Source of the DNA: Haliotis rubra
Taxonomy: Eukaryota
Assembly (NCBI RefSeq): GCF_003918875.1
Contig: NW_025767455.1
Location: 310,001 to 374,000 of the forward strand
Direction: 5' to 3'
Length of the DNA stretch: 64,000 bases
Shown here: positions 63 to 54,374 of the stretch, one piece after another
Layout: every line of letters starts with the position of its first letter
Numbering within the stretch: the stretch's first letter is position 1
The notes under the pieces: generated by a model
Databases searched by the model: none
Told to the model about the DNA's origin: nothing
The model's input: only the letters and a program-made list of their open reading frames with translations
Program-made: the position numbers and the translations under genes

Positions 63-3000
63 TCAGTCTGCGTCAGGAAGACCGCTGCCGGTGCTGATAG
101 ATGGATATAACGCAGGTCGGTAGGTTCCATCCTCGTGCATGTCTTTATGAATTGTCACATCATGTTCCCCGTATGTTGGATTCTGAAACGTAGCATCCTG
201 TTCGACATCCAGATCCACAAAGCGGGCGCTGTGGCGCTGTTTGTACTTCTCCACCACTGGCTCACGGGAGCTTCGAAAGGGGTCCGCCTGAAGGCCAACC
301 ATTGTGAAGTAACGTAAACAATATATTTTACATCTTCAGTCTTGTTCCATTTTGATTTCATTTATTCGTATTCAAAAACCCAGATAAAAATATTACAATT
401 GTCGAATGGTGATACGTTGGCCGCTGTAATCAGTATGCGCCGATGTACCCACAATATGAACGTTGTGGGTAGGTAGACGGCATGTGGGTATTGTACCCAT
501 ACAGATGTTGTACCCGACTTGTAGTCATTGTACACGCCACGCTGACATTGTACCCAACATGGCGGTTGTACCAGCACGTGTATATGCTCCTCGACATTCA
601 AAATACAAAACGTTCACAGGTTTCTAAATATGTCATGTCCACAAACACATTCACTCCACCTACCTTCTGTACCAAATAAAAGCAGCGACGACTACAACGA
701 CGACAAGAACTCCAACTACAATGCCAACTATTAGGCCAACTGGAGTCGCCGACTTGGGCTGGAAGACAGACATACACGAAAGGTTAGTATAACAAAACAC
801 CTCCTACATCGTCCGTTTGGGAACACGTTTTGCGATTTACAACTACAGCTATGTTACACCGTTAGAATTATGTGTGCCAAAAGAGGTACAAAGTGAGACC
901 ATAAATCTAAGTCATACATGATCGCAACCAAGCTGAAACAACGAGGATCTGCCTGACAAACCAATAATCATTATCAATGTACATCAAGGATTCGAACCCA
1001 CGATTATAGGATCATGGGTCGCCAAAGGGACACAATTCTGAACAACACCTGGCCATCTTTACCACATAACCGGGTTACATTAGTTACAAGCATTCATAAT
1101 AGTAGAACTCCTGAAGATGCGGGTTAGAATTGATCTTCAGTACTGACTGACTGAGTTTGGTTTTAGGTCGCTTTTAGCAATATTCCAGCAACATCACGGC
1201 GGGTGATCTTCAGTAATCCATGCTTGTTGTAAGAGGCGACTAACGGGATCGGGTGGTCAAACTTGGTTGACACATGTGACAGTTGCGTTGATCGATGCTC
1301 ATGACGTTGATCACTGGATTGTCTGGTCGAGACTCTATTTATTTACTGACCGCCACCATATAGCTGGAATATTGCGGAGTGCGGCGTAAAACTAAATTCA
1401 CTCACAATAGAAGACAACATCGGACACATACCTCAGGTTTTGACATCCTCAGTTCCTCTACCGATCCTTTGTATACATTGTATGGCATTGAATGTTCCAG
1501 GTAGTCTTTGGACACGGAGAAGGTTGAAGCTGGTGGTGATGTCAATCGCATTGTCACCTCAGTGATCTCCTCTCTGTAAACGAAAACCAGATCAATCTTC
1601 CAGGAAATCTTCTATACCTCAATACCTCATGCTCTGAGGTAGCCATGTATACACTTAAAAATGTATTTAACCAAAAACGTACAAACGCTATCACAACGTT
1701 ACTAGGCTGAAAGGGGCGGTAGGGTTGCCTTGTGGTTCAAGCCTTTGCTCGTCACGCCAAAGCCCTGTTCGATTCCCCAAATGGGTACAAGTTGCGATCC
1801 CCACTTCTGGTGTCAATATAGTGCTGTAATATTGCTAAAAGCAGCGTACAACAATTCTTATTCACACTATACTGCAAACGTATGATACCAATCAACTTAT
1901 TAGAAAAACGAGTGAGTGAGTTTTACGCCGCACTCAGCAATATTCCAGCTATGTGGCGGCGGTTTGTAAATAAACGAGTCTGGACCAGACCATCCAGTGA
2001 TCAACAGCATGAACATCGATCTGCGCAATTGGAAATCGATGACATGTGTCAACCAAGTCAGCGAGCCTGACCACCCAATCCCGTTAGTCGCCTCTTACGA
2101 CAAGCATGGGTTACTGAAGATCAATATTCTAACCCGGATCTTCACGGGTTTCAAAAAACGAGGTTTCACAAAACAATTATACGTTTCTCAAAAGAAGAAT
2201 ATTTCACCTACCCTGCACTGTCATATAGTTGTTTCAGGCTGATAAAAATCTGTATACTTGAAGGATTTACGTTCTGTAGCCTTGAAGCAATATCTGACTG
2301 AAGAGTTGATTTGAGATCAGGAATTATGATCTTCTTGTAGGATACCTTCACGTACACTGTCACGGTTTCTCCTAAAGAGGTAAATAAAATATTTTTATAG
2401 ACATTGTATATAATTATTAATATCTAATTAATTTATTGAACATATTTTATGGTTTTGAGATGTTAATACCATTGAATATACTTTATTACAACCTAACTTT
2501 CTTATTCATGTCAGTGGATACAGGGCGCATTGGATCGTATACAATTATACTGTACACCATTTTCAAGAAAACATGGGATAAAAGATGTGGACAAAGGCTA
2601 AAACTAATGTGTCTAAATAATAATGTGTTTAACATACGCCTTGGAATACCATTAAGCTTCAGTTAAATAGGTTACATAGATCAGACCATTTATAGAGACT
2701 TTGTGTTCTTGTTTTGTCCCAAGAAGTTTTCAACCAGATGAATGTTCTTTAGAGATTAGTTTCGGTTCTTTATTAAAAACTGAAATGTAGAATATTTTTC
2801 ATTTGAAATTAAAATGAGTTAAAATAAGTTTTTGTCGTTGATGCCCATAGGACCTAGTGTCCATGATTTGATTTCAAATGGCAAACTATAATTGATATTG
2901 TTCTCCAGGCGTGTTCATAAAGATTTCACATGATGGCTTCAAGATAAACATGCATAACAGATTCTGGTTAATTTTCACAAATGTTATCACCAGCAATATT

Positions 3001-6000
3001 CACTACAAAAGATTCTGTTTTGGTACAGATAATAATGTAAAATAATCTACACTATAAATAGTATTTTCCACCAAGAGATAGTAGTAGTAGTGAGTAGTAG
3101 TAATGTGCTGCCGTTTATGAAAACTACGTTTAAGTGTTTCATAGTAGAGCCTAATATTTACCATTCTATTATATTAAAAATACCCTTTATGCTGCGCATA
3201 GGTTTTAGACAACCCAAAGGAATCTTGCTCTGTGCATTGTAGACATTCTTAATGCTTTTATACCTTTCATGGATATAGGTAAGAACATTAGACCAGTGGC
3301 TTAATAAGAGTGGTTCTGATAAAATATCTTCATTAAGTATAGTTCTCACTACTGTACCTGTTGTAGGATTCCTTGTTGGCGCTTTTGTTGACGTGGAATG
3401 TTCAGATGAAGATTGTGTGTGATGGACAGAGTGAGTAGATTCTCCGGCAGTACCGGACGTCGATGCAGAGGGTGAAGGCCGACTGGGAGATACAGATTCA
3501 CCTGCACCTGGACTTGTGGACACAATTGAAGTAGATGACCCTCTTGATGTCGTTCTACCAGGTTGGATGCTTGTTGGTGTACGGCTGCTTGTTTGGGGGC
3601 TCATGGGTGTTCCTGAAGACTGCGTTGTAGGAGACGGCTCTCCTGATGTCGCGCTACTATGCTGGGGACTTGTTGCTGTGCGGCTGCTTGTTTGGGGTCT
3701 CATGGGTGTTCCTGATGTTGTGCTTCTATGGAGAGGGTTTGTTGCTGTAGGTCTGCTGGTTTTGGAGGTCATTGGTGTTCCTGAAGATTGCTTTGAAGTG
3801 GATGGCTTGAAGGATGTTGATGTGTGCGAGGTCAGTGAGACAAATGTTGATAACGTTGGCGTTGGTGTCTGAAATGAAAGATCAATTGTTGTTAAAACTT
3901 CGATGTTGTATATTGTTTTTTTTTTTTCACTCAGCACGTGTCCAGCTCAATGACAGCGGTTTGTAAATAGGCGAGTCTGGACCAGACATAACAGTGATTG
4001 GCATCATCGATCTTCAAAATTGGGATGCGATGATCAACCGAATCTGATCACACGATCCCATTAGTCGCCTCTTACGACGATCTAATCTGGAGGTTAATGA
4101 CAATGTGATTGCAGCAGACCGGGATGAAATTACGTATACCTACCTTCTTAGATGTTGAAGTTATCTTTGGTGAGGTTTCGGTGCTTCTTGGCCTTTGGGA
4201 TGTGGTTCCTTTTGTTGATGGAATCGATTTTGGTGTTGTCTTTGCTGAGGTTTCGGTGCTTCTTGGCCTTTGGGATGTGGTTCTTTTGTTGATGAAATCG
4301 ATTTTGGTGTTGTCTTTGTTGAGGTTTCGGTGCTTCTTGGCCTTTTGGGTGTGGTTCTTTTTGTTGATGAAATCGACTTTGGTGTTGTCTTTGTTGAGGT
4401 TTCGGTGCTTTTTGGCCTTTTGGGTGTGGTTCTTTTTGTTGATGAAATCGACTTTGGTGTTGTCTTTGTTGCGGCTTCGGTGCTTCTTGGCCTTTTGGGT
4501 GTGGTTCTTTTTGTTGATGAAATCGACTTTGGTGTTGTCTTTGTTGCGGCTTCGGTGCTTTTTGGCCTTTTGGGTGTGGTTCTTTTTGTTGATGAAATCG
4601 ACTTTGGTGTTGTCTTTGTTGAGGTTTCGGTGCTTTTTGGCCTTTTGGGTGTGGTTCTTTTTGTTGATGAAATCGACTTTGGTGTTGTCTTTGTTGCGGC
4701 TTCGGTGCTTTTCAATTTTTGGGACGTGGTTCGTCTTGTAGATAGTATTATTGGAGATGATATATTAACAGAATGCGCTGTTCCACGAGTGGCCCCAGGC
4801 GTTGTCTTCTGGCCATTAGTGGTTGTGGACTTTACAGTTGTTTGGGCCTTCTTGACTGTTGTTGGTTTCACTGATAATGTCTTCGGCTTATTAGGCGTTA
4901 TCGAAGATGTCTTTGCTGTCGTCGATGTCACAGTGGATGGTTTTTGTGTTGATGTTGATATTCTTTGTTTTGTCGTACCTAAAGAATATAATCCATACAG
5001 CTTCATGACAATACTTGAGAATAAAGTAGAACACACTGCAGCAAATGAAATGCATACACATAATAATAAAATAAATGAGCTAAACTATAGCCATTCACAC
5101 TTGATGTTACGAATCACACAATGGTGTAAGTATCAGGGAATCAAATTTGCAAATTTCAAACAGTATATTCTGATTTTGTATATTTTTACCGTGAATAAAG
5201 AACATTAAATCTGGTTAATTCTCACTTATTAATCTAGTCGATGTAGCGGCTGACGTTGAGGTAGTTGCCTTGATTGTCGACGTTGATAGGAGTAATATTT
5301 CACAGCGTGAACCTGCAATAGTAGAACAGGAATGTAGAAAGCATTATGATGGTAACAGATCAATAGAATTCAGCCAATAACCACTTGAACAGTTCACCGT
5401 TAATAAAGAAAATACCAGACCGATCTGGTGATGGTACAGTACGGTTTTGTATTTTGATATTTCTTTGCTATAGACGTTCGACTCAAAATAAGATTGTCAG
5501 GTAGGAGTTTCAGGAAAGTGAATTGAAATCCACATGGAATGCCTACCCTTAAATCCAGATGTACAGGAACAGGTGACCATTGATCCAGTAAAATGGCATG
5601 TTCCTTGATTCAGACAAGGGTTCTTTGTACATGGGGTGGTCTCACAATGTGTACCATTAAATCCAGATTTACAGGAACAGGTGGCTTTCGATCCAACAAC
5701 ATGACACGTTCCTTGATTCAGACATGGAATCTTAAATGTACAGGTGGGTGCAAGTTCTCACAATGTGTGTTCCGTTAAATCCAGATTTACAGGAACAGGT
5801 GACCTTTGTTCCAGTAAAACGGCACGTTCCTTGATTCTGACATGGATTCTTTGTACACGGGGTGGTCTCACAATGTGTACCGTTATATCCAGATTTACAG
5901 GAACAGGTGGCTATCGATCCAACAACATGACACGTTCCTTGATTCAGACATGGATTCTTTGTACAGGGAGTGGTCTCACAATGTGTACCGTTATATCCAG

Positions 6001-9000
6001 ATTTACAGGAACAGGTGGCTATCGATCCAACAACATGACACGTTCCTTGATTCTGACATGGATTCTTTGTACATGGACTGGTCTCACAATGTGGTCCGTT
6101 AAATCCAGATTTACAGGAACAGGTGACCTTTGTTCCAGTAAAACTGCAAGTTCCATTGTTCTGACATGGATTCTTTGTACAAGGGTTTTTCTCACAATGT
6201 GGTCCGTTAAATCCAGATTTACAGGAGCATGTGACATTTGTTCCAGTAAAACTGCAAGTTCCATGATTCTGACATGGATTCTTTGTACATGGGTGGTCTC
6301 ACAATGTGGTCCGTTAAATCCAGATTTACAGGAACAGGTGACCTTTGATCCAGTAAAACGGCACGTTCCTTGATTCTGACATGGATTCTTTGTACATGGA
6401 GTGGTCTCACAATGTGTACCGTTATATCCAGATTTACAGGAACAGGTGGCTATCGATCCAACAACATGACACGTTCCCTGATTCTGACATGGATTCTTTG
6501 TACAGGGGGTGGTCTCACAATGTGTACCGTTATATCCAGATTTACAGGAACAGGTGGCTATCGATCCAACAACATGACACGTTCCTTCGTTCCGACATGG
6601 ATTCTTTGTACATGGACTGGTCTCACAATGTGTTCCGTTAAATCCAGATTTACAGGAACAGGTGACCTTTGTTCCAGTAAAACTGCAAGTTCCATTGTTC
6701 TGACATGGATTCTTTGTACAAGGGTTTTTCTCACAATGTGTTCCGTTAAATCCAGATTTACAGGAGCATGTGACATTTGTTCCAGTAAAACTGCAAGTTC
6801 CATTGATTCTGACATGGATTCTTTGTACAGGGGGTGGTCTCACAATGTGTACCGTTAAAACCAGATTTACAGGAACAGGTGGTGACCTTTGTTCCTGATT
6901 CTGACATGGATTCTTTGTAATGGGGTGGTCTCACAATGTGGTCCAATCCGTTCCTTGATTCTGACATGGATTCTTTGTACACGGGGTGGCCTCACAATGT
7001 GTACCGTTAAATCCAGATTTACAGGAACATGTTGCTTTCGACCCTACAATATGACATGTTCCTTGATTCTGACATGGAAACTTGGTACAGGGGGCGGTCT
7101 CACAATGTGGTCCGTTAAATCCAGATTTACAGGAACAGGTGACCTTTGATCCAGTAAAACGGCACGTTCCTTGATTCTGACATGGATTCTTTGTACATGG
7201 AGTGGTCTCACAATGTGTACCGTTATATCCAGATTTACAGGAACAGGTGGCTATCGATCCAACAACATGACACGTTCCTTGGTTCTGACATGGATTCTTT
7301 GTACAGGGGGTGGTCTCACAATGTGTACCTTTATATCCAGATTTACAGGAACAGGTGGCTATCGATCCAACAACATGACACGTTCCTTCGTTCCGACATG
7401 GATTCTTTGTACATGGACTGGTCTCACAATGTGGTCCGTTAAATCCAGATTTACAGGAACAGGTGACCTTTGTTCCAGTAAAACTGCAAGTTCCATTGTT
7501 CTGACATGGATTCTTTGTACAAGGGTTTTTCTCACAATATGGTCCGTTAAATCCAGATTTACAGGAGCATGTGACCTTTGTTCCAGTAAAACTGCAAGTT
7601 CCATGGTTCTGACATGGATTCTTTGTACAGGGGGTGGTCTCACAATGTGTACCATTAAAACCAGATTTACAGGAACAGGTGACCTTTGTTCCAGTAAAAC
7701 TGCACGTTCCTTGATTCTGACATGGATTCTTTGTACACGGGGTGGCCTCACAATGTGTACCGTTAAATCCAGATTTACAGGAACAGGTGACCTTTGATCC
7801 AGTAAAACGGCACGTTCCTTGATTCTGACATGGATTCTTTGTACATGGAGTGGTCTCACAATGTGTACCATTAAATCCAGATTTACAGGAGCATGTTGCT
7901 TTCGACCCTACAATATGACATGTTCCTTGATTCTGACATGGATTCTTGATACAGAGGGTGGTGTCACAATGTACACCACTAAATCCAGATGGACAGGAAC
8001 AATTGAATGTTGACCCTACTACGACACACTTTCCTCCGTTGTGGCAGGCAACGTTGTGACACGGTGTTTGTTGGCAGGAACTTCCGGTATAACCTGACAA
8101 ATACATGAAAAGCATGCAGTTCAAGAATATGTCTTGAAAACTTAAATAATGGAAAAATAACGATTTTAACATGCGAGTAGATTTATAGAATTAAACAAAA
8201 TAAGTTCATAGATAGTGTAATGGCTTGTAAAATTATATCTAGTTTTTTCAGTATGTTTTTAAAGGCAAAGACGGAAAGACACTGACAATGCACTATCAAA
8301 CACTCACAGCATTGTACTGGTTTAAAGTCCGGCTTAATGGCAGTAAATATTAAATTCCTAATCTGTAGAAGTTTAATTGTGATGTCACTTCCGGTTCCGA
8401 TGAATCTGCCAATAATCATCATCACGAACCTTTACATTATGTAAGTGGTATTCAACAGTTTGGTTCAGAAGCTTTGTTTTTGATTTGCTAAATGATGCCA
8501 TCACTTCCAGATCTGGATTAGGTTCACTGAGGGCTGGATGATGCCATCGAAGCACAGTATTACAAACACATGTCATGTCGAGCTACGCAATATATTTGTA
8601 CTCAGGTTGCACAGCTTTCCTTAAATTGTCTCATATTTATTTGTATCTATCTATCTATCTATCTATCGTGCAGTTCCAGTGGACAAGCGGTAATACGGTG
8701 ATAAGGTGGAGGAGATGATGATGGTTCTGTTTCATAGACTTCTAAGATTACATTCCGTACAATAACATTGGTTACAGTTTGCGCAGCTCTTAGATCGATT
8801 TGTGGCACAAAGTCTTGTCGAAGGGGAAGCAGCGTGAGATCATGGGAAACACGGATGAGAATGACGTTTGTGAATATTAAATATTTGTCATGGAAGGACT
8901 CTGAAGTATTAATTTACAAATCTCACAATAAAATAAACCTTTAACCTAAACATATAGGGAGACAGGCTTTTAAAGTACAGTTAGTAGTAGGCCATGCACC

Positions 9001-11399
9001 ACAACCAAAAAACAAGTCATGTCTACATTGCTCGGAACAAGATTAGGAGGAGGTTAAAAAAATTGGGTTTAACTTCGCTTTCAAGATTATTGCACTTTCG
9101 TATTGACGTATTTCGTATCCCAATTTATACCTGTGTCACAGTACTAGCCCAAGTCCCACTTCATTATCTGTATCCAACTGAAGCAAATTATGTTGACTCT
9201 GGGACAACCAATAATTATTTTACCCTCAAAACCGACCGTAGGCTGGGTAATAACAAATACCACGTTTAACGTCTTTTATTGTGACGTGGCCGGGATTCGA
9301 ACCACCAACCTTCAGCTCTCAAGGCTGACACTGTATCTGCCAGACCATGGAGATGATGGATGTACAGTAGGACTCATAGATAGTTAACTATAGGGTTAAC
9401 GATGGGAGCAAAATGTTTAGCGCTAAGTAGCCTTACAGTCTGTCTATTGTACCAAACAAATATCACATTTTCACGTTAACAGGCTACACGCGCGTTTCAA
9501 ACTCCGTGAAAGAGATTCCCGGATATAAAACTACACTATCAATCAGGTGTTCAAGAAGTGAGAGGTTTTCTCAATGTTCAACGCAATCAATCAGGATCAA
9601 GTACTGCGTTACTGAGAAACCTTAATGTCGATGGCATATTCAGGACATTAAGTATATCTTCAGTTGGCATGTCTGTCTTTAGTTCAGGTGTAACTTGACT
9701 ATGTGTAACATACCTTTAATGCAGTGTTTTGACCCATCCGGGCCACATGTGTAGTGGTCAGCTGAGCCTGGGTTACACAGGACAGAACAGTTCGGTCCAT
9801 AGTAGTGGGGGTCACAGGTCACAGTGATGGTCAGTGTTAATCTGAAATGTGGAGTCACCCATATTGACATTGCTTGTAGTGGCAGATATTGCATGTACAG
9901 GGTATAAGTCGTTCCTGAACATGTATATCATGATAATTCAAACATAATAGCAAGAGAATATATAGTTCCGATTACTAGTATCTGCCAAAAGAGATTCTAT
10001 CGGGTGTAAAAAGCAAACTAACGAAGAAAATGTTTTGAGTGGATAACATAAAGTTAAAATCCGTGTGAGATGGACCTATTTATATAGATATAGTGTGGGA
10101 TACAGAGCGAGACGAGAACACTCTTAGAGAAAATATTGCTGTAGTCACGCACCTTGCATGGCTGTCGGTAAGCGTGACGTTAGCACCATTGTGAGACGAC
10201 GGTAGAGGGGTCTTCAAGTCATCCAGAGGAAGAGGTGTTGATGACAACCAGTAATCATCACCCACTTTGACCTCAACCTCCGCACCTGTCTGAACAAATA
10301 CAGTTTCTGTTTGATTACGGAGTTCACTGATACACAAGTATAAAGCAGTTTCAACTCGATCACCTTACGTTCCCGTTCTGCTTGTCTTAGTGTAAGTGAG
10401 TAGTATTTTATGCCATTTATATACCCTTGATATCACGGCAGTGGGACACCATAAATATGCTTCACACCTAGGCTTCAGTATGTGCATAAATAAATAAATT
10501 CACTCTTGTCAATATTTAAGTGTTACCTTGTTTCTATCAGAAAAAGTGTTCAAGTTGAGTATTTAAGTTTCATTCGTGGACCACCTTTTTTGTACACTGT
10601 TTACTGTTACTGAGAAAGAATGCATAACATGGTATACTTTAGCTGTAGGTGTAAACGTCATGGGCTAAATAGCTTCAGTATTGACTTTCAGGCGGCACGA
10701 CTAGATCGCTAAATTTACCTGTAACGCAGTAAACGACTTGACGATGGGATTGGCTATCCCGCCGTTAATGCTCGTCCCAAATTTGGCATCCCTCGTGCCC
10801 TTGTACTGGTCACTCGTCTTTGTACAGGAACTGTGACAAAATAATGAGACACCTTCACACTCTCAAAATACGATCGGTTGTTGTCGGTCATAATTGGGAA
10901 GTCGTACATTTACAATTGTCTGTACCTCACGAGAAACGCCTCTTTCTACCATCTTCAGCAACGTCAGTGTATATAGTAAAATATGCGTTAGATGACTTTT
11001 CCTAATGATTGTAGACAATGGCCTAGTAGAACTTCAAGGTTGTTTACCTTCAGATTAGACTTTGATGTGTGGTAAAACAACTTACTCTTTGCCGGACAAC
11101 CCCTTGAAACAGACGGTGAACAGTAGGTCACAGGGATGAGATGAGAACAAGCTTCCTTTGCATCCTGCATCTGATGACCTGTGATACTCCAGCAGATGTA
11201 CAGACACTCTCCCGCTGCCGGTACTGGGCTGTCGGGGAGAGACGTCGACACATGAGACAGCAACACCCAAATTTGCAATTATTGCATGTTTACAAACATG
11301 TTTCTGAAATGAACCTTAACGGCTAAATGGAATCTTGTCACGTACCTCAAAGCAGTTAGCAAACATAAAAACGACCAAAAGGTAGTTCCACTTCCACAT
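63..11399 (-). CDS. Gene 1: membrane-bound Delta-like/mucin hybrid (SP-MNNL/C2-DSL-~24 EGF-mucin-SEA-like?-TM-NPxY tail), ~1700 aa
   Basis: GT-AG exons: 11346-11399 (MWKWNYLLVVFMFANCFE), 11086-11228, 10719-10830, 10153-10289 (MNNL/C2-like), 9714-9841 (DSL), 5547-8093 (EGF array), 5226-5312, 4144-4978, 3358-3868 (mucin), 2212-2371, 1432-1573, 664-758 (TM GLIVGIVVGVLVVVVVVAAFIW), 63-287 (tail). Phases are consistent except for indels in the EGF array, a 1-nt homopolymer loss at ~4284 and a 1-nt discrepancy near 279-282. Confidence 0.85.
664..758 (-). CDS. Gene 1 transmembrane exon
   Basis: ttccag|PKSATPVGLIVGIVVGVLVVVVVVAAFIWYRR|gtaggt: hydrophobic helix followed by basic stop-transfer residues. 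Confidence 0.85.
1110..1405 (+). mobile_element. SINE-like family B copy (CATGCTTGTCGTAAGAGGCGACTAA core)
   Basis: Same sequence recurs at ~1912-2149(-), ~3930-4085(-), ~13660-13895, ~18555-18657(-), ~30995-31168, ~35065-35300 and ~53335-53508. Simple-repeat tail. Confidence 0.75.
1710..1865 (+). mobile_element. tRNA-derived SINE family A, degenerate copy
   Basis: Similar to the full copy at 34796-34965; B-box-like GTTCGATTCC. Confidence 0.7.
1912..2149 (-). mobile_element. SINE-like family B copy
   Basis: Reverse complement of the family at 1110-1405. Confidence 0.75.
4160..4715 (-). repeat. Coding 75-bp mucin VNTR (~7 copies, TKTTPKSISSTKRTTPKRPKSTETS)
   Basis: Units recur at 4232, 4306, 4381, 4456, 4531, 4606 and 4681, inside exon 4144-4978. 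Confidence 0.95.
5547..8093 (-). repeat. Coding tandem array of ~24 EGF-like repeats (108 bp / 36 aa) in one exon
   Basis: Unit TPCTKNPCQNQGTCxxxGSKVTCSCKSGFNGTHCET. Frameshifted or garbled near 5730-5770, ~6290, ~6805 and 6870-6950. Confidence 0.95.
9714..11228 (-). CDS. Gene 1 exons 2-5: Notch-ligand N-terminal (MNNL/C2-like) and DSL domains
   Basis: SGRVSVHLLEY..GC..PCDLLFTVCFK and NPIVKSF match the MNNL pattern. CDPHYYGPNCSVLCNPGSADHYTCGPDGSKHCIKGYTGSSC has DSL cysteine spacing. Confidence 0.85.
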
Positions 11400-15090: not shown

Positions 15091-15204
15091 CGTTGTATGT
15101 TTGTGTGTGTGTGTGTGCGTGTGTGTGTATTTATGTGACTTAAAATCTTAACTCACTAACTCACATTTCGTATCTATGTGTTATAGAAGATAACATACAT
15201 TATA

Positions 15205-36548: not shown

Positions 36549-36552
<4 letters not shown>

Positions 36553-36601: not shown

Positions 36602-36603
<2 letters not shown>

Positions 36604-36677
36604 TTATGTGACTTAAAATCTTAACTCACTCACTCACATTTCGTATCTATGTGTTATAGAAGATAACATACATTATA

Positions 36678-42600: not shown

Positions 42601-44890
42601 CTTTTCGTCAGGTACAGACTATTGTAAATGTACGACTTCCCAATTATGACCGACAACAACCGATCGTATTTTGAGAGTGTGAAGGTGTCTCATGATTTTG
42701 TCACAGTTCCTGTACAAAGACGAGTGACCAGTACAAGGGCACGAGGGATGTCAAATTTGGGACGAGCATTAATGGCGGGATAACCAACCCCATCGTCAAG
42801 TCGTTAACCGCGTTCCAGGTAAATTTAGCGATCTTTGTGTTGCTGAAAATTCAGTACTGAAGCTATTTAAGCCATTACGTTTACATCTACACTTGAAATA
42901 GTACTATGTTATGCATGTTACATTCTATGCATTCTCCATCGGTAACCATAAACAGTGTACAAAAAAGGTGGTCCACGGATGAAACTTAAATTTACGTCCT
43001 TTTCTGACAGAAACAAGGTGACTCTTACATATTGACAAGAGTGAATTTATTTATGCACATACTGAAGCCAAGGTGTGAAGCATATTTCAAAGGATGCAAA
43101 GAAAGCCTTTTTGAATCTGCTCATCCCTGTAGCCTAATGTTCACCGTCTGTTTCAAGGGGTTGTCCGGCAAAGAGTAAGTGGTTTTACCACACATCAAAG
43201 TCTACTCTGAAGGCGAACAAGTTTGACGTTCGATTAAATCCATTGTCTACAATCATTGAAAGACTATTTATGGTTAATGCATATTAACTATATAATTTAA
43301 CACTGGTGAAGATGTACAATGGTGCAAAATAGAGGTTGTTCTTATGAGGTATAGATTGAACATGTACCACTTTCGAATTAAGATATGCCGCGCACAGGTC
43401 TCAGGTACATCATAATTCAGGTATTTCATCACATCAGATGGAATCAGCACAAATCGTATATTATCCTATATGCACGGGAAGGGTGTGACAGAGCCTCATG
43501 ATTATATAACAGTTCCTGCACAAAGACGAGTGACCAGTACAAGGGCACGAGGGACGTCGCATTTGGGACGAACATTAATGGCGGGATAGCCAATCCCATT
43601 CTCAAGTCGTTCACTACCTTACAGGTACATTTAACTAACTGGTCATGTCGCTTAAAAGTCAGTAGTGAAGCTATTTAACTAGTGACATCGTTACAGGGAA
43701 TGTGTGAAACCAGGGATTTCACATAAACCCTAAATCCAGAGTCAGTGATTTTATGAAATCCCTGTTATTCCTAGGGATTTCATGTATTCCCTAAAATTTC
43801 CAGGGATTTCATGAAGTTACTGAAATATTAGCTCAGGGATTTCATGAAATCCCTGTAAGGCTTTATTGAAATAGAGAACACCAAATTTATAATGCGAGTA
43901 CAGAGTATATGCTGATAAAATTCATTTGTTTGGACAAGATAGGCTGTTGTCATACAAGTTATTACACTTCAGTAGCACTTTACAACATTTACAACGTATC
44001 GATTTACATTGGTTAGGACCACAGTTACATTTCTGGAAACCCTGACCACCACAATTCGACTCGAAAATCACAGCTGTGTGGAGGAACAGTTCTTTGTCCA
44101 TTGTCACATCATTCGTAGAGAGAAGACGCTGAGGACAAACATGAAATATGTGCTTTGAAAAATACCCTTTCCTTCCCAATGGCCTAATCTGTTTATGCTT
44201 AAAAGTAATGGTGACTTGATGTTTCACCAATATAGGATTCGCTGCAGTCGCATTCTGTCTGGTAGACGACACCTGCAGGATCTGGCTTCTTTGCCGGGGT
44301 GGGTCTGCCTGTGGCAAAGAAGCCAGATCCATTAGGATCAAAGAACACCAGGCCTCTGTAAGAAACAGACTCTAACTCCGCCATAACCGACCACCTTAAA
44401 GCCAACCCAAACCACAACATCAGTTGGAACACCACCAAAGTCATCGAGAGGACCAGCCTGATTTAAAAACCCGAAAACTACTTGAAGCTGTCCACATAAA
44501 GAAGATTTGTCCATTTGTTCAGCCATCAACAGAGATGAAGGATATTTCATCCCCAAGGCCTATCATCACTTGCTCAATTAATCTAATGTAACCCCACTCA
44601 ACCATTGTACAATATCCATTGTGTAACACTGTACATTATCCATTGTGTAAACATCACTTCACTACTGGCTTCCCAAGAGTCCTTATATCACTTATGTAAA
44701 CAACCTATGGACATCATTCCCTGTTGGCTGCCCATCAACATCCTTAATCTCTTATGTATACAACCATGTACATGTTCTTTACTGGCTTCCTTTCAACCTA
44801 CTTAATCCTGTGTTATCAACCTCTCCTATTGTATAAACAACTCATTTTCGCCTCATCCCTCATCTATTGTACAAACATCCCATGCATATA

Positions 44891-45650
44891 TACTGGCCAC
44901 ATAAAGAAACAGTGCACACAGAAAATAGAAATATAGGCACACAGCGTATTTATACATAAATTATACATTTGTGAACACAGCAAGTACTGGAGACAATCAA
45001 ACGCTCATGCACGTGCCAGGCGACGTGACGTCATTGGCGGTGTCCTGAGGCCTTGCAATTTGTTACAGCACGTGCATCCCGTACAGATGCACACAAAATG
45101 TGAAACTCTGAAATTGCTGTCACTGTCGAAAGCTTGATCTTTGGTCATTCAAACGTTCACCAATTCACATGAGAAGATACTTGCACATCATGCCAAGATT
45201 AACATGTGCTCAACGTCATTAAACCATTGGAATGGTTCGAGCAGGAATGAGCCAACAACAGGTGGCAGCACATTTCCAATGCCATCGTAACACGATATCT
45301 GCATTGGTCAGGCGTTATCGAAACAGTAATGACGTCGCCGACCACCCACGTTCAGGGCGTTCCCGACGTAACGACGCCAAGACAGGACAGATGGAATCGG
45401 GTGACTCATCTCAGATACAGGTTCCAGACAGCAGTGACCACGTCCCAGACCATTCCTCAGTCCTTCAATGCTCATTTGCTAGCCTTTGAACTTCTGACGT
45501 CATCGTTACGGATATTGTTCATGTTCTTTTGACATTTTCTTTGGTCAGATACTTCAGCTTATAACGTGTCTACATCATTTCGTCTTTGCTGTGTTGTATT
45601 TCAATTATGAAGGCATTTTCTGTGTGCACAGTTTTTTTATGTGGCTAGTA
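44891..45650 (+). mobile_element. Tc1-like deletion derivative inserted in the Penelope fragment
   Basis: TIRs TACT(G/A)GCCACATAAA..AAC.GTGCACACAGAAAAT, TA TSD, HTH fragment (ORF 45232). Empty site at ~22730. Confidence 0.85.
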
Positions 45651-48600
45651 TATATCACCCAAATTACTTCCCATGTAACACTTGCTTGACAACGACATTA
45701 GAGTCTATGTCGAAACGTCGCCTATATAGACTAAAGAAGTTGTATATCCATAAAAATAGTCCTCATTCTTCATCTACCCAACTTCTACAATGCCAATCAA
45801 AGAAAGTTGTATACAAATTTGCCGCTTTTTAGGAATATTAAGGCAGGTTTTAGCGGTTAAAAACGATACACCTGGACAAGTTTACGCGAAATCCCTGGTT
45901 TCACACATTCCTTGTAACATATTAACGGCAAAAATACCTACTCATGCACATTAGAACATGCAAAACGAGGATGATCGAGTTGAAACTACATCATACTGGT
46001 TAACAAAGTAATCAAACAGAAATTGTATTTGTTCAGACAGGTGCGGAGGTTGAGGTCAAAGTGGATGATGATTACTGGTTGTCATCAACACCTCTTCCTC
46101 TGGATGACTTGAAGACCCCTCTACCGCCGTTTCACAATGGTGGCACCGTCAACCTTACCGACAGCAATGCAAGGTGCGTGACTACAGCAATATTTGCCCT
46201 AAGAGTGTTCTCGTCTCGCTCTGTATCCCACTCTACATCTATATAAAGAGGTCTATCTTACACAGATTTTAACATTATGTTTTATCCATTCAAAACATTT
46301 TCTTCTTAAGTCTGCCTTTAACGTCCGACTGAAACTCTTAGAGCAGATACTATATATTCTTTTGCCATGACATTTTGAATTGTCATGTGTAAACATGTTC
46401 AGGAACGACTTATACCTTGTACATCAATATCTGCCACTACAAGAAATGTCAATATGGGTGACTCCACATTGCAGATTGACACTGACCATCACTGTGACCT
46501 GTGACCCCCACTACTATGGACCGAACTGTTCTGTCCTGTGTAACCCAGGGTCAGCTGACCACTACACATGTGACCCGGACGGGTTAAAACACTGCATTAA
46601 AGGTATGTTACACAAAGTCAAGTTACACCTGAACTAAAGACAGGCATGCAGACAACTGAACATGCCATCGACATTAACGTTTCTTAAAAACGAAGTTCTT
46701 ACCTCAGATGTATTGTACTAGACACTGAGAAAGCCTCGCACTTCTTTAACACTTAATTAAAATATGTAAGGCTATCCAGGGATGTCTTTCACGTACTTTG
46801 AATCGCGCGTATAGCATGTTATCGTGAAAATGTGATATTTGTTTGGTACAACAGGCATAGATAGCGCTACACATTTTGATCCCTTCGTTAATCCTTTTGT
46901 CAGTGTCTAAGGGTTGCACTGTACAGCCACCGTCTCAGTGCTCTAGGGGATAGATCTGCACATATCTAAATCAATGTTAATGTACAAGATGTGAACCCAT
47001 CTTAGAGATTGTCTAGGAAGTAGAGCACACACCTGCCATCTTCTTCACCTTATGTCCATATCATCTCCAGTCCACAGAAGCTGCGATATGTTTTAATGAA
47101 AACTAAAATCAGACAATGTATGTAAAACTTAGCAACCGGAAACGACCATGATTGCTATATTTTGTACGAATATATTGCGTATCTCGACATATCACGTGTT
47201 TGTAAAACCGTGCATCAATGGGCGTCATTCATCCCTCAGTGAACTTAATACTAACTGGAAAGTGATGGCATCACTTAGGACATCTAAGAAACAAATTGAA
47301 ACAAGGCTTTCTACAACATGATTATTTACAAAGATTATTCAGGACGTAAAGTGACACCACAATTAATCTTCTAGAGACTGGGGATTTAGAATCTACAGTC
47401 ATTATGTCAGACTTTAAACTAGTACAATGTTGTCAGTGTTCAATAACGCATAGTCGGTCTCTTTTATTGTTTACCTTTACAAGCATAGTGGAAAAGCTAG
47501 ATATATTTAAAGTAAGTCATCACATCACATGTGTGTACGATGCATGCATATATTTTGTTTAACTCTATAAATCTACTCACATGTTAAAATCTTAATTATT
47601 TAAGTTATGCAAATGGAATATGCTAGCAACTAGATGCTATCTCTGTAATTTTCAGGCTATACCGGAAGTGCTTGCCAACAAACACCGTGCCACAACGTTG
47701 CCTGCCACAACGGAGGAATGTGTGTTCTAGTAGGGTCAACATTCAACTGTTCCTGTCCATCTGGATTTAGTGGTGTACATTGTGAGACCACACCTTGTAC
47801 AAAGAATCCATGTCAGAACCAAGGAACGTGTCATGTTGTTGGATCGATAGCCACCTGTTCCTGTAAAGCTGGATCTCATGGTATACGTTGTGAGACCAAT
47901 CCCTGTACAAAGAATCCATGTCAGAATCAAGGAACGTGTCATGTTGTTGGATCGATAGCCACCTGTTCCTGTAAAGCTGGATCTCATGGTATACGTTGTG
48001 AGACCACTCCCTGTACAAAGAACCCATGTCAGAATCAAGGAACGTGCCGTTTTACTGGATCAAAGGTCACCTGTTCCTGTAAAGCTGGATTTAATGGTAC
48101 ACATTGCGAGACCAATCCCTGTACAAAGAACCCATGTCAGAATCAAGGAACGTGCCGTTTTACATCAATGTTTTTACGTTCTTACGCCAGTTGTGACGTT
48201 ATATTAATTGCTCTTTGTGTTTTGGGTTTTGTTAATACCATTAAGTAAATATTCTGTTATTCAGGAATGTACTGTGATGTTCTGTCAAACACAAATGAAG
48301 TCACTCCATCAATGGCAGCATCATCAACAGACCGGACTCTTCCACATCTTCCGACTCCAACAGGTATCAGTTTAAACAAGTAAAACTTAAATTTACCTGT
48401 CAAGGTGGAAATGATAACTGACAAAGTTGAACCTTCATAGGATCAGGTTTCCAGGCCTTTACTTAAAATAGGCTAGACCCAAGTAGCTTCCAGGCGCGTA
48501 ATCATATAATGATTGAATATAGAATCATGGCTTCTATATGTACTAATAAATCTGTGAAAAGTAACATCATGATGGCAATTACAACCTCAATCATATACTG

Positions 48601-50333
48601 CAGTGTGTGTATATCACGCAGGTCACAGCCGCCCACAAACCACAGCCAGATTAATTTTGCCACACAGCGTCTTACAGGAAGCATACTACCACTCGTAAAA
48701 TACTAGTTCCGCTTGTAAACATTATTGCCATATATGTCAATGTTGTGTGAATGTGTGAGTAAAATATGGCCCCCATAAATGAACTATTTGGGACACTGTT
48801 ATAATGGAACTATGGCAGTCAGAAGTGTGTCTCGTATTGTCTCGTATATTTACTTTCAAAAAGGTAAAATCTCGAAAGTTATAATTTAAGAGAAAAACAA
48901 GCTGAAGATTGACCTAACCATTTGCACGATACAATTTATCCTCATCATAACGGGGAAAGAACTGAAAAAAGACCGGAGACTAATGTCCCTTTATGTTTTG
49001 CTTCTGTATTTGCAGGTTGTGCCCACAACATCAGTAACTGTGAGTTAGCGGAGTGTCCAGATCTGACCTCTGTCCGATGTGTCCGGTGTCGGGCTAGTTA
49101 CACAGAGGTTGAGGGACGCTGCATGAGTAAGTTCAAAATATAATTGAAAACAAAATGCAATTTAGAAATAATACAGTTTTCAATGCTAATATCGCCTAGT
49201 TGGGTGATAATTCATTGTGGATAGTTGTGCACAGTATCTATTAGACTCAGCCGGCCATTGGTTCGAAACCTCGATTCCTTTCCGGAGCCTACAAAATCTC
49301 AGTTTTTAAGAAGACGACTTTTCAATCAAACCCGGAGTGACTATGAGAACTGATGAATTATGTTTCAGCGTGTCCAACCCGCACCCCTATCCTGCATTGT
49401 GAGGAGGAGCAATCAGTCGGCTGTCTCTTCAGATGGTGCAGCAGGTGCGAGCAGGGATTCTACCGGGAAGCTTCTGCTTGTGAGGGTGAGGCTTCCTTAT
49501 AACTCGCATTCTTCCAAATACACCACCTAACTTTCTTCAATGTATACAGAAATCTCATAAGAAATCATGTCAAAAGCTTTTGATGATACGATTGACAATA
49601 TGTCTTAACATCCAACACAGTGTGTCCCCGTCTCCACGCCGGATGTCGTGATCACGTCTGCTCCTCCGCTGATGACGTCAGGTGTGTTAGATGTCAGCCG
49701 GGTTTCTTCCTGGCTGGAACCACCTGCAAAGGTAAACAATAAGTTTAACGTTCATCTTGTGCTTATGTTTAATCTTATGGAATGAATGTACCACTGAGGC
49801 CAAATACCTTGACATATCAATTCCATATGTGCTCTTCCAGAATGTCCTTCCCCAAACCCAATGTGCGACGAATTCACCTGTAGGGACTCCAATGACGTCA
49901 CATGCACCAAGTGCAAAGATGGATTCCTGGAAGTAGACGGCCAGTGTCTCTGTGAGTTATTTTAGTTGAAACACAACGTTATACTTACAAGTCTTTTCAT
50001 CAACTTACTATACAGATAAGAGAGCGATGGGTGTGGTTTGAGCAGTAGTCCAGTTATATCAGGGTGTTGTAGTATGCTGTGGGAAGAAGGCACTTTGGTG
50101 AACCCCATGAGTTTGGTGCTGAAACCACGAATAATAAAGGGACACAACTCTGCAAAGAGATTTGAGACGTCTTATTAGACAGGGCAACTAATGGCCCGCT
50201 CGCGTGAGAATACATTTCATCGTGTAACCAAAAACAATTTCGGCAAGCAAGCATTTGTAGCTCTTTGAAATGGTAACTTTCTTAGATGTTCCTTCTTGAA
50301 AATGAATATCAGAAATATCACAATGGTAACTAC

Positions 50334-50694
50334 ATGGTGAGGTGAGGTGAAATTGGGGTTTAAAGTCGTGCTTGAGAATATATCGCTCATATGACGACGT
50401 GCATGCGTGTGTATGTGTTTGTGCGGCTGCTTGTACTAGCCCAGACTGAAGCTGGTTTTATAGTGCTAGCCCACTGGGATACCATGCCGCAGTGAAGCAT
50501 GAATACCCCACTCAGACACATTATACTGACTCCGAGCCGACCAGTCTTTGTTGTACCCATTAATGCCGAGCGCCAGGCAGAGACCAACAAGTACCATATT
50601 GTAACGTCATTTGGTATGACTCGGTCTGGGATCGAACCCGCGACCTTCCGCTCTCCGGGCGGACGCTCTAACCACTACACCACGGAGGCGGTCC
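50334..50694 (-). mobile_element. tRNA-derived SINE family C
   Basis: tRNA-like head with GGTTCGATCCC, (CACCT)n tail, near-perfect TSD TGGTAAC(T/C)ACA. Degenerate relatives at ~9140-9355 and ~24080-24290. Confidence 0.8.
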
Positions 50695-50890
50695 TGGTAA
50701 CCACAAACTATTTAGGGGCGGTGGGGTAGACTAGTGGTTAAAGCGTTGGCTTGTCACGCCGAAGACGCGGGTTCGAATCCCCACATGGGTACAATGTGTG
50801 AAGCCCATTTCTGGTGTCCCCCGCCGTGATATTGCTAAAAGCGGCGTAAAACTAAACTCAGTCAGTCAGTCAGTCAGTCAGTATAAACTA

Positions 50891-52418
50891 AACTCTGTCA
50901 AAAAAGAAACGCAACCCCTGTATTTTAGAGATTTTGATCTGAAGTTTTTAGACGACACAGCATTTTTATTATTTAAGACAGAAGTCTGAAATTTGGCAGA
51001 ATAATAACCAAGATGGGCATGTTTAAAATTGTCATTTCAAAAGTCATCTCACAGACACCAGTTTGTCACCAGGGGGGCGTCTTTCTCAGTATCTCGCATG
51101 AGCACCACGATCTGCAATCACTGCACGGCATCTCCTTGGACAAGAACGGATAAGACGCCGGATTCTTTCCTGGGGAATGGCTCTCCACTCCTCCTGCAGT
51201 GCAACGCCGAGCTGTTGCAGCGTCTGTGGCGGCGGCTGACGTTGACGTACGCGTCGACCCAGAGTATCCACAGGTGTTCAATAGGGTTGAGGTCTGGTGA
51301 TTTAGAGGGCTATGGCAAGACATTGACGTTGGAATTCTGCAGAAAGTTCATTGTTGCACGTGCAGTATGAGGCCGGGCGTTGTCTGGTTGAAAAATCTGT
51401 GTCTGTTGGTCAATAATCGGGAGAAGGTGAGGCTGTAATACGTGGTTGATGTAACGTTGGGCTGTCAGGTTCCTTCAACGATCACCAAGTCTGATTTCTG
51501 GTTGTATGAGATGGATCCCCAAACCATAACGCTTTCTCCGCCAAATCTGTCCCCCTGTCGGACGCAGATGGGCGCAAAACGTTCATGACGTCTCCTATAC
51601 ACACGTTTTCTTCCGTCGTGATGTTGCAAAAGAAAACGGGATTCATCAGAAAACCAGATGCGCCTCCAGTTTTGTAAAGTCCATATCCTTACGTTGTTGC
51701 ACCACCTGAGTCGTCGGCGGAGATGTAGGGGGCGTAGTACAGGTCCAACAACTGGTCTACAGGCACGTAAACCCGCTTCTTTCAGACGGTTCTAATCGTT
51801 TGAGCTGACACTCTCCTCAAACCTGGTATTTGTGTGGCAGTCACGGTTGGTAGGGCATGCCGATTACGCAGGTGATGGACCCGGATGTACCGATCTTGAA
51901 GGGGGGTCGTGATTCTTGGCCTTCCACTTCTCGGGCGATCGTTGGTCAAATTGAAGTTGTTGTAGCGGCTCCAAAGTCGGGATATCGTTGTTTTGTGAAC
52001 ATTTAGGTGCCGTGCAACAGTTCCAAAACTTTCTCCGGCTTGAACACGACCAATGGCGATATTTCGGTCGGCAGCACTCAATCGTGGCATTTTTCACACA
52101 GCTTTTCATGCGACAAATGAATGAATATAATACGAAAGCACATGGGCTTTTATACACCCCTACATTAACTGCCATTTTCATGATTTGCATGTGGTTTTTT
52201 TGTGCGAAGTCACCATGAGGGTCATTTCATGCGTTGTGACGGAATAAGCAATAAAATACACTTATGCGTACAAATGCAGTTGTTTGGATGGTAATCTTCA
52301 TTAATTACGTGTATAATTTCAATACATTCGAATAACATTTAGTTTGGAAGCAATAACTTCATTCAAACGAATTTTTCATATCTGAGGACAGGGGTTGCGT
52401 TTCTTTTTTGACAGAGTT
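50891..52418 (-). mobile_element. Near full-length Tc1 transposon (frameshifted transposase)
   Basis: 31-bp TIRs AACTCTGTCAAAAAAGAAACGCAACCCCTGT, TA TSD. ORF pieces from ATG 52090 carry HTH, FSDESRF, QPDNARPH and SPDLNPIEHLW. Confidence 0.92.
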
Positions 52419-54374
52419 TATTTAGCGCAATTGTGCAAAGATCGTCCATGACCTGATTTCATTTGGCTGCAGTATGTCCGTCCACGAGCCTGATTCCTGA
52501 CTGTGTAGACGTTGCCAGAGACGGCTGCTTTAAAAAACTGGTGCAGGAAGTGTGCTCCAGGCTTCTTCATCAGCGGAACAGCTTGTGATGGTAAATAAAG
52601 TTAGCCTTTCGGCCTGTAAACGGTACGCTGCCCCGAAAGCCGATGTTTAATTATTCTCATAATCTTTTTCCACTTTGTTTTGCTTAGCGTCATAAAAGGT
52701 CAATGCCAGAAAAATAGGAGTGACCGAAACAGAAACCCGTACACAAAAAGCCAAAACAATGATCAAAACTCCACACGGAAACTAAACGCAGATCAGTATC
52801 TATGGAACAATGAATAGATGTCTTCCAGAAATGATCATGAAGCTTCTCGTTGATTGCCCGATCTGCGAGGTCTGCCTCTTCAAACTCTTTAGAATATAAA
52901 TTAGAATTGTCTGAATATGCCACCCACTGTTCTATATTTTAGGACGTTAAAAGTGCATTAGCTCTTCCAATGTATCACTGGCCAATATACATTCGAGCAC
53001 ACCTCGTGTCATCATTTTCAGTGATGATCCATATACTTTTCATACACCCCTTACACAGAACAGAAATCTGTTCTAAGGATAGTCAAGGCTGGGTATTCAT
53101 TGGTAATGACGTTTCAGAAATATGTCATATCATCACCTGCCGAAAATGTATTAATTAACATACTTTTCCACGTTATTATTTTCAAAGTGTCCATTTTTCA
53201 GTCTGTCCCCACCTGGTGTAGGCTGTCAACTTGCTGAATGTAATTCTACCCAAGACTCGCGCTGTGTCACATGTTTCCATGGCTACGACTTAAAGGGTGG
53301 AATCTGCAGTAAGTAGTTGTTATTCCATAGTTCGGGATCGGGTGGTCAGTCTCGCTGACATGTTTGACACATGTTTGACACATGTCAGCGTATCCCAATT
53401 GCGTAGACCGATGCTCACATTGTGATCACTGGATTGTCTCATCCAGACTCGATTATCAACATTCCGCCTCCATATAGCAGGAATATTGCTGAGAGCTGCG
53501 TTAAACAAACCATACCACTTGCTTATTAAAACAGTTTATTAAAGTCGTGTGTTTCACATTTCTTGTGTAGATTGTAATGATACAAGCACACTTGTTTTGT
53601 TTTCAGCACATTCCCATGGCAACGAATCAACTACTACCTTAACCCAATGCGTGGACAACCCACACGTCGATTGTGCTTCCCTTCACTCATCTCTCAACGT
53701 CTGCTCAGAACCGACTACGGCCTGTGAATACTGCCCTCGTTACTGCCACATGTGCAACACGTGCACCCAGGGTGTGCCTATCATTGGCTGATGAAGCAGA
53801 ATGAATGAGATCTGTTTCAGGCTGTTTTGCACAGTATTTCAGTCACATCGGGTGTGCCGCTGCTGAAACCCCGACGAGATGACTGTGCAAATGTTTGTCA
53901 TTTACGCGTCTTGCGGGTATGATGCTCTCAAAAGGAAAATGTAATCAGCCTGATCAAGTGTTAGGACCCATAGTTATATATTTCTGGCACGACGAAGGGA
54001 CGCAACTCTGCTCAATACCAATGGGACTTAGAAGCTGTCATTGTTGAGATAAGTATACGTATAGTATTATGAAACAAATCCTGTAAGTTTGTTTTGTTGG
54101 GAATATATTTGTGCAATCATTTTATCGATATGATAACGCTATAATCTGCAAATGCTGTACAGTCACTTCTTGTTGTGTTTGTTTATTTGTTTAACGCCAA
54201 ACTCAGACAGATACTTCAGATACATGACGACCGTATGTAAATCATGTCTTGAAGTGATTCGTAATTTGACATCGATCAACGCAAATGCGATTCCATGTAT
54301 AAACCAAGTCGCCCAGCTTGACCACCCGAAGTACCAGCCGTATATGGACACGGAGTCAAAGTCATGTAGACTCT

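Follow-up and report, generated by a model that had tools for sequence, protein, structure and literature searches.

The window analysed here is a stretch of 64,000 nucleotides (nt) from the abalone Haliotis rubra (GCA_003918875.1, contig QXJH01000738.1:310,001-374,000; all positions below are numbered within it), and it holds a Haliotis-specific cluster of divergent Delta-like genes. The DNA is eukaryotic and rich in transposable elements, with GT-AG introns. Its place on the contig follows from the RefSeq protein XP_046549956.1, whose locus is identical to positions 32,131-58,082. A head of the Notch-ligand type (C2-DSL-EGF) stands on two tails in this cluster, and one of the tails was found on two heads; the head and the tail are therefore independently shuffled modules. 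The new observation is that a single tail cassette ends both DSL-head proteins and secreted cadherin-repeat proteins. Exon shuffling had been proposed in an earlier reading of the same DNA from its letters (the original prediction). With the phase-1 modules, the head on two tails and the reuse of the tail in four Haliotis species, the modular construction by phase-1 exon shuffling is well supported, on stronger evidence than that reading had offered. Taken as a whole, the probable explanation is a shuffled cluster whose intact member, gene 2, encodes a secreted protein of the matrix, mucus or adhesion type and not a Notch ligand.

Gene 2 is the only one of the three copies with an uninterrupted open reading frame (ORF). 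Its model consists of 13 exons and one ORF of 2,958 nt, 985 amino acids (aa), and all its introns are GT-AG with good consensus. The features of gene 2 are as follows (a slash marks the exon border).

20311-20367, + strand: exon 1, ATG and a hydrophobic signal-peptide-like segment, 19 aa; donor AAG/GTAAGT
20486-20628, 20965-21076 and 23169-23305, + strand: exons 2-4, C2 of the MNNL type (C2 by fold), GT-AG sites
23607-23734, + strand: exon 5, DSL, Pfam PF01414, E 1.5e-9, 38.4 bits against a cut-off of 24.2
25170-26690, + strand: exon 6, 14 EGF repeats, 13 of them 108-nt tandem units; phase-1 donor AAG/GTACGC
27661-27771, 28127-28243, 28379-28489, 28592-28702, 29148-29264 and 30863-30970, + strand: exons 7-12, six Cys-rich repeats, phase 1-1
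31263-31447, + strand: exon 13, linker and 8-Cys ShK-like C-terminal module ending in ...PIIG-stop; Pfam ShK below the cut-off

All the gene 2 introns from the DSL exon to exon 13 are in phase 1, and each exon from the EGF array onward is therefore a symmetric 1-1 module. The last EGF (...CSCRPGYKG/, 26650-26690) has no sixth Cys, and the next exon begins with a Cys at the right spacing. When the 985-aa product was scanned in windows of 19 residues, only the N-terminus was strongly hydrophobic, and no transmembrane segment beyond the signal peptide was detected. Since there is no membrane anchor, the gene 2 product should be secreted. The C-terminal end, with the stop after ...PIIG, is kept in all relatives.

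Each EGF unit (e.g. 25300-26690) has the sequence C-QNQG-T-C between its second and third Cys, which fits the O-fucosylation consensus C2-X4-(S/T)-C3; the consensus motifs for O-glucose and Ca binding are absent. A phase-1 GT occurs at the position homologous to the terminal donor in 12 of the 14 units (25286-26690), for example TTAACG/GTACAC. Splicing from these internal sites would stay in frame and could yield isoforms with differing numbers of EGFs.

The whole-head Pfam, PDB and structure tests were performed with the gene 3 head (P0006, RefSeq XP_046549956.1, 287 aa). The DSL domain was recognised as PF01414 in all three copies, in P0006 and in P0001, with 38-45 bits (cut-off 24.2) and E values of 1.5e-9 to 1e-11. 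Pfam EGF matches followed directly after DSL: 14 stretches for exon 6 of gene 2, 10 for the undamaged part of gene 1. In the phmmer search against PDB the head matched DLL1 with E 5e-20, was aligned with DLL4 C2-EGF3 over residues 52-253 and also matched Jagged-1/2. The AlphaFold2 model of the gene 3 head had a mean predicted local distance difference test (pLDDT) of 72.9. Its best 24 Foldseek matches were all Notch-ligand C2-DSL-EGF structures (E 7e-13 to 2e-9, 236-300 columns), namely DLL4, DLL1, JAG1, JAG2 and the fly Delta and Serrate, followed by generic C2 domains with TM scores of 0.6-0.75. The retention of the C2-DSL-EGF fold was thus confirmed for the predicted head structure.

The Notch-binding face of the human JAG1 DSL domain is formed by F199, R201, R203 and F207 (PMC3415683). 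In the HMMER alignment to DLL1, CSVFCRPRDDAFGHF pairs with CSVLCNPG--SADHY, and the abalone head has L, N, G and A in place of the four JAG1 residues and is two residues shorter in this loop. Aligned together with the Deltas of fly, sea spider and mite, the head shows this pattern again. The alignments show an apparent loss of the conserved Notch-binding face of DSL while the fold remains, which makes the 'repurposed' ligand heads of the original prediction plausible.

The six tail repeats of gene 2 are 35-38 aa long and are encoded one per exon, each with six Cys in the pattern CP..C..C..CxxC..G[FY]..C. The AlphaFold2 model of the tail consists of beta-hairpin repeats with pLDDT values of 56-85, and its ShK-like end, at a pLDDT of about 30, is unreliable. 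The best Foldseek matches of the tail were the EGFs of NELL (E 3e-3 to 5e-3), and TNFR was also matched weakly. The CxxC..G[FY] beta-hairpins match the FU repeats of R-spondin only weakly in fold, and one tail paralogue is named 'PCSK5-like' in RefSeq; the fold matches of E 3e-3 or worse are not significant, and neither is the best match to R-spondin FU1-FU2 (E 7.8e-3, probability 0.7-0.93, TMt 0.3-0.38). The terminal module has 8 Cys, compared with the 6 of ShK. The ShK profile matched only the two H. rubra copies among seven relatives, and the profile search of the ShK-like end against PDB sequences gave nothing significant. In Pfam scans of the single exons, which covered MNNL, furin-like and other families, only DSL, EGF and the sub-threshold ShK were found. 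Judged by their patterns, 'furin-like' and 'ShKT' are reasonable labels but not established memberships. The furin-like and ShKT tails that the original prediction gave to genes 2 and 3 stand as six Cys-rich exons and an 8-Cys exon.

The relatives of gene 2 were determined in homology searches that span 0.55-1.75 times the query length, with the tail of an H. rufescens protein as the query of the tail search. In H. rufescens, the four isoforms XP_048248175-178 agree with gene 2 in the order of their parts and in the residues at the exon junctions. The tails are 80% identical over 285 aa without gaps, and the head region of exons 3-5 is 78% identical. The junction between the EGFs and the Cys-rich repeats is present in all four isoform models. 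In H. cracherodii, a 900-aa gene with the gene 2-type tail at its end lies 6 kb upstream of a cadherin-type gene.

The tail search also led to proteins named 'cadherin-related family member 1-like' in H. rubra, H. rufescens, H. asinina and, via its cluster, H. cracherodii. The predicted cadherin-type or 'PCSK5-like' proteins with the shared tail are the following.

XP_046560029/30, XP_046549961/2, XP_048248170-174 and XP_071107173: signal peptide and cadherin repeats, then six Cys-rich repeats and the ShK-like end

These tails are 68% identical to that of gene 2 over about 280 aa, with 92-95% identity in exon 11. In the H. rubra cadherin-type gene, the tail has one repeat per exon as in gene 2, and its introns are unalignable with those of gene 2. 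One cadherin-type copy lies about 125 kb from the window on the same contig, and in H. rufescens the DSL-head and cadherin-type genes have consecutive accession numbers. The cadherin-type proteins thus resemble gene 2 in tail, exon layout and neighbourhood and differ in the head, where cadherin repeats take the place of C2-DSL-EGF.

In both H. rubra and H. asinina, the next gene after the cadherin-type one encodes a sodium:solute symporter (SSF) and lies on the opposite strand (L003 27225-33492, L004 43186-49571), and the neighbourhood is therefore syntenic. In L004, fragments similar to the tail repeats are present at 2287-3862, upstream of the cadherin-type gene.

In comparison with canonical DSL ligands (DLL1/DLL4, Serrate/Jagged), gene 2 has the same order of signal peptide, C2 (MNNL), DSL and EGF. 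It differs from them in having no transmembrane or cytoplasmic part, in the replaced residues of the DSL binding face, in an MNNL region that Pfam does not recognise, and in EGFs that form a homogenised 108-nt tandem array. The Cys-rich/ShK-like and mucin tails are a feature of the abalone genes known from no canonical DSL ligand. In the literature, no paper was found that combines DSL with ShKT. Non-canonical DSL proteins are already known in molluscs: the family is expanded in lophotrochozoans, with 138 DSL-family genes of which some are combined with other domains, and the mollusc Delta2, present also in abalone, is a lineage-specific Delta duplicate without a transmembrane segment that arose by early termination and has no added tail (PMC8166818). 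Delta2 and gene 2 are alike as lineage-specific molluscan DSL proteins without a transmembrane segment; compared with Delta2 as described, the abalone genes carry in addition the cassette of six repeats and ShK-like end or a mucin/transmembrane tail.

A library search with the 42-aa DSL exon gave as top matches P0006, a low-complexity Ig-rich protein and many multi-DSL proteins, and no further members of the architecture. The library proteins P0016, P0021 and P0029 have 3-6 tandem DSL domains with few or no EGFs, and match the DSL tandem-repeat genes described in bivalves (PMC8166818).

From the lost DSL binding face, the freely changing EGF copy number and the tail held in common with an adhesion-type head, we infer that the gene 2 product is probably not a Notch ligand. 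It would most likely be a disulfide-rich secreted glycoprotein of the extracellular matrix, mucus or adhesion type. Its N-terminal C2-DSL tip may represent the binding end and the O-fucosylatable EGF rod a spacer, and the conserved Cys-rich/ShK-like tail may dock or cross-link to a partner common with the cadherin-type paralogues.

Several observations weigh against this explanation. Pfam MNNL (PF07657) was undetected both in the single exons and in the whole 287-aa head, so that the MNNL/C2-DSL-EGF head of the original prediction holds for DSL and EGF by Pfam and for C2 by fold, but not for MNNL by Pfam. The AlphaFold2 input alignment for the head held canonical Deltas, which could bias the model to their fold. 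The Cys-rich repeats gave no Pfam hit, and their profile found nothing at E <0.29 against PDB. The terminal module covers all 37 positions (1-37) of the Pfam ShK profile (PF01549), but its scores of 16.1-17.1 bits (E 0.0085-0.017) stay under the cut-off of 20.9. The RefSeq models of the relatives are predictions, and no complete gene 2 model was found in the searched H. rubra annotation, either at 282-896 aa (with the last EGFs as query) or at 455-1449 aa (with the head). The lesions of genes 1 and 3, described below, may be real or partly Nanopore errors, and if they are errors, the family could be more intact than it is read here. The non-Notch reading of the function rests on four aligned residues and the architecture. 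Secreted DSL proteins can, moreover, signal, as DSL-1 of Caenorhabditis elegans does.

The last point leads to the first rival, in which Notch signalling is modulated by gene 2 and its relatives as soluble agonists or antagonists. C. elegans DSL-1 and similar proteins, as well as engineered secreted Delta and Serrate, have no membrane anchor and act on Notch. The full ligand fold in the head, the predicted secretion and the putative O-fucose site in each EGF unit (C2-X4-T-C3) agree with such a role. The Delta2 without a transmembrane segment, found in molluscs including H. discus hannai, agrees with it as well (PMC8166818). The abalone head shares with these proteins the missing anchor but not a conserved binding face, in which four residues are replaced and two loop residues deleted (PMC3415683). 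The EGFs after DSL form a homogenised lineage-specific array and not the conserved EGF1-3 of ligands, the ratio of non-synonymous to synonymous differences per site (pN/pS) among the heads, 0.5-0.7, is high for a core developmental ligand, and the tail of gene 2 is common with cadherin-type proteins. A modulator of Notch signalling is accordingly considered an unlikely identity, and the secreted matrix, mucus or adhesion-type protein is preferred.

The three head copies were located by self-BLAST: genes 2 and 3 lie on the + strand and gene 1 on the - strand, and gene 1 is 79-81% identical to genes 2/3 at the nucleotide level. The self-comparison resulted in two duplications. The tandem segmental duplication (12,158-32,068 vs 33,188-54,379) has 80-96% identity, with genes 2 and 3 91-96% identical at the nucleotide level in self-BLAST. 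The inverted duplication (5,538-11,245 on the - strand vs 20,469-26,697 and 42,289-48,163 on the + strand) has 79-89% identity. The inverted duplication, which separates gene 1 from genes 2 and 3, is the older, and the tandem one, which separates gene 2 from gene 3, the younger. Head exons 1-5 and their splice sites are undamaged in all three copies. Three paralogous heads had been predicted, and they are clearly homologous; 'near-identical' was somewhat generous, as the protein identity over exons 2-5 is 88-90% and about 11% of the residues differ, mostly in the C2 exons. Other details of the original prediction were reproduced by measurement. Its span of 63-53791 runs from the stop codon of gene 1 to that of gene 3. 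The predicted end of homology after the EGF exon at a phase-1 junction was found at 5538 in gene 1 and 26697 in gene 2, 9 nt and 7 nt past the phase-1 donors (last exon bases 5547 and 26690). The ATGs of genes 1 and 2, at 11399 (-) and 20311 (+), are head to head with 8,912 bp between them, as against the 8.9 kb stated.

11400-20310, no strand: spacer between the divergent ATGs, 8.9 kb, within the tandem segmental duplication

Tc1/mariner remnants lie in the spacer at 14554-14934 and 15625-15888, together with a 32-nt minisatellite at 17385-17870. As the spacer consists of 8.9 kb with transposable-element remnants and a minisatellite and does not form a compact promoter common to both genes, the idea of a bidirectional promoter for the pair was rejected. 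The inverted duplication is enough to explain the head-to-head layout.

Gene 1 continues after its EGF exon, at the same phase-1 junction as gene 2, into an unrelated tail. Its features are as follows.

11346-11399, 11086-11228, 10719-10830, 10153-10289 and 9714-9841, - strand: head, exons 1-5; exon 5 is DSL, Pfam E 5e-10
5547-8093, - strand: exon 6, EGF array of about 23.6 units; phase-1 donor AAGG/GTAGGC, homologous to that of gene 2
4144-4978, - strand: mucin repeat exon, 75-nt Ser/Thr/Pro/Lys-rich units, 7.4 copies; phase-1 acceptor
3358-3868, - strand: second Ser/Thr/Pro-rich exon
2271-2371, - strand: short exon
664-758, - strand: transmembrane exon, 23-residue hydrophobic segment at 672-740
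about 270-66, - strand: cytoplasmic exon, NPTY at 171-182; stop at 63-65

The exons of the predicted mucin/transmembrane/NPxY tail are thus present and the intron phases fit from each exon to the next (1, 0, 1, 0, 2), but the reading frame is broken. Exon 6 has a cluster of indels at 6949-6801 (-43, -4, -1, -19, +3, +1 nt) and further ones at 6293 (-1) and at 5769-5733 (+2, +4, +1, +3); the net change is a multiple of three. Five in-frame stops result, at 6933, 6021, 5946, 5913 and 5760. The search for an intron bypassing the first stop gave only poor pairs, with donors matching at most 5 of 8 consensus bases and pyrimidine fractions of 0.41-0.53. Read literally, gene 1 ends after about 10.5 EGFs. 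In the mucin exon, the frame shifts at a 1-nt run-length difference near 4284. The transmembrane exon is not in a continuous ORF with the head, and the Ser/Thr/Pro repeats and the transmembrane segment are not in one open frame. Pfam assigned no family and no SEA domain to the tail pieces; gene 1 resembles membrane-tethered mucins in its 75-nt Ser/Thr/Pro array and transmembrane segment and differs from them in the broken frame and in having no SEA. The last EGF of gene 1 (...CSCTSGFKG/, 5547-5590) also has no sixth Cys, and as the next exon is Cys-less, a Cys would be left unpaired if it were translated.

A second rival, equal to the central proposal of the original prediction, makes gene 1 a working membrane mucin-receptor that shares its head with genes 2 and 3, which are soluble; together they would be a set of receptor and decoy or of receptor and effector. 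At 5547, the EGF exon ends in a phase-1 donor that fits the phase-1 acceptor at 4978, 568 nt downstream, with phases chaining to the transmembrane segment and NPTY, and the non-tandem Ser/Thr/Pro ORF of 262 codons is unlikely by chance. Exons 4 and 5 of genes 1 and 2 are 97% identical and intron 4 is 89% identical; the exons being more conserved than the intron, the gene 1 head was probably under past constraint. As the assembly was built on Nanopore reads and polished once with Pilon, homopolymer errors in duplicated sequence are expected, so that the lesions of genes 1 and 3 may partly be errors; the mucin-exon lesion is a single homopolymer-length difference (PMC6774278). The five stops in the EGF exon, in contrast, come from indels of up to 43 nt with no convincing bypassing intron. 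No protein joining the head to the mucin/transmembrane tail was found among database proteins of 455-1449 aa, longer proteins being outside that range. The heads of the three genes differ at about 11% of the residues, and the divergent layout is a by-product of the inverted duplication, with a spacer filled by transposable elements. A working receptor is therefore improbable, and the receptor with its decoy or effector in mucosal defence is unsupported. As assembled, genes 1 and 3 are not open, through decay or truncation of the copies, through mis-assembly, or through both. Of the two secreted partners predicted, gene 2 stands as an intact anchorless gene; gene 3 is a damaged recent copy.

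The features of gene 3 are as follows.

42131-42187 (exon 1), 42306-42448 (exon 2), 42707-42818 (exon 3a), 43513-43624 (exon 3b), 46037-46173 (exon 4) and 46475-46602 (exon 5), + strand: head
from 47656, + strand: exon 6, about 4.5 EGF units, running into former intron sequence
49016-49126 (exon 7), 49369-49485 (exon 8), 49621-49731 (exon 9), 49841-49951 (exon 10), 52473-52590 (exon 11), 53202-53308 (exon 12) and 53607-53791 (exon 13), + strand: tail, splice sites all intact

The stretch homologous to 25,677-26,824 of gene 2, which includes the exon 6 donor, is missing from gene 3 (junction 48163/48168). Compared with gene 2, two frameshifts were found: exon 11 is one base longer in an A run, and exon 12 one base shorter in a C run. 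The RefSeq protein XP_046549956.1 ('delta-like protein 4') corresponds to the gene 3 head with exon 3b, and the annotation splits the gene into this 287-aa head gene and a 205-aa tail gene at 48312-52588. When the tail was reconstructed from an initial ATG exon (48,312-48,363) and with the shifted frame of exon 11, its length came to exactly 205 aa. In the tail, the exons of genes 2 and 3 differ by 4.7% and the introns by 10-15%; the smaller divergence of the exons points to constraint on gene 3 for most of its history.

The short ORF MAASSTDRTLPHLPTPT lies at 48312-48363 in intron 6 of gene 3 with a phase-1 donor, CAG/GTATCA, and gene 2 has a homologous stretch near 26950; the ORF may provide an alternative start or act as a cassette exon. 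Internal phase-1 GTs of gene 3 are situated at 47772, 47880, 47988 and 48096, and the RefSeq head model appears to use one of them. As most EGF units have such a GT, the lost donor of gene 3 could be substituted. Gene 3 is also a mosaic: 42289-43087 is gene 1-like (88.7% to 10453-11245), and from 43091 a second, gene 2-like copy follows with a partial exon 2 and a full exon 3 (43513-43624).

The divergence between genes 2 and 3 (20200-31447 vs 42020-53791) is uneven, 0.7% in exon 1, intron 1 and intron 4 and 6.6-7.7% in exons 2 and 4. The differences amount to 11/143 in exon 2, 9/137 in exon 4, where they are mostly non-synonymous, and 2/301 in intron 4. This unevenness points to gene conversion or to duplication in two steps. 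No positive selection is claimed for the C2 exons, given the mosaic gene 3 and a background divergence that ranges from 0.7% to 15%.

A broader reading sees a combinatorial locus, in which heads (C2-DSL-EGF, cadherin) and tails (secreted Cys-rich/ShK-like, membrane mucin/NPxY) are recombined by phase-1 shuffling and the EGF number is tunable through the internal GTs. If genes 1 and 3 were intact, the same head would exist both tethered and soluble, for lineage-specific non-Notch surface recognition in the mucosa, between gametes or of self and non-self; this is speculative and rather doubtful. That heads and tails are separate adjoining genes and the fused models prediction artefacts is very improbable: the annotated split of gene 3 between a head gene (287 aa) and a tail gene (205 aa, starting from the ATG exon at 48312-48363), and the missing fused H. 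rubra model at 282-896 aa and 455-1449 aa, speak for it, but the split is expected because gene 3 lost its exon 6 donor, the 13 exons of gene 2 join in frame at consensus sites, its last EGF receives the sixth Cys at the right spacing from the next exon, and all four H. rufescens isoform models retain the junction.

Further repeats were observed around the genes. The 32-nt minisatellite of the duplicated spacer lies 5' of both genes 2 and 3, at 17385-17870 (15 copies) and 38850-39677 (about 26 copies), with 92-97% matches. Remnants of Tc1/mariner-type transposases (HTH_Tnp_Tc3_2, HTH_38/28, DDE_3) are present at 14554-15888, 36005-37415, 29999-30452, 45232-45489 and 51782-52090, both between the genes, in the spacer, and within introns of genes 2 and 3, and a related element occurs in the introns of a cadherin-type gene on another contig. 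Downstream of gene 3, a retroelement fragment with a 629-aa ORF and a zf-RVT domain was found at 56920-58809 (-). The repeat at 18323-19314 recurs at 40128-41147 and 55495-56489.

With their reading frames broken by tandem EGF arrays and Nanopore indels, the H. rubra models are divided or absent, and the locus is a caution for the annotation of tandem-EGF genes in Nanopore-based assemblies. If the fused models are real, they represent clean and recent domain shuffling at symmetric phase-1 introns, in both directions and within one gene neighbourhood. In molluscs, the C2-DSL module would then be reusable outside canonical Notch signalling, and the products would be uncharacterised secreted proteins to be sought in the mucus, foot adhesive and shell-matrix proteomes of abalone.

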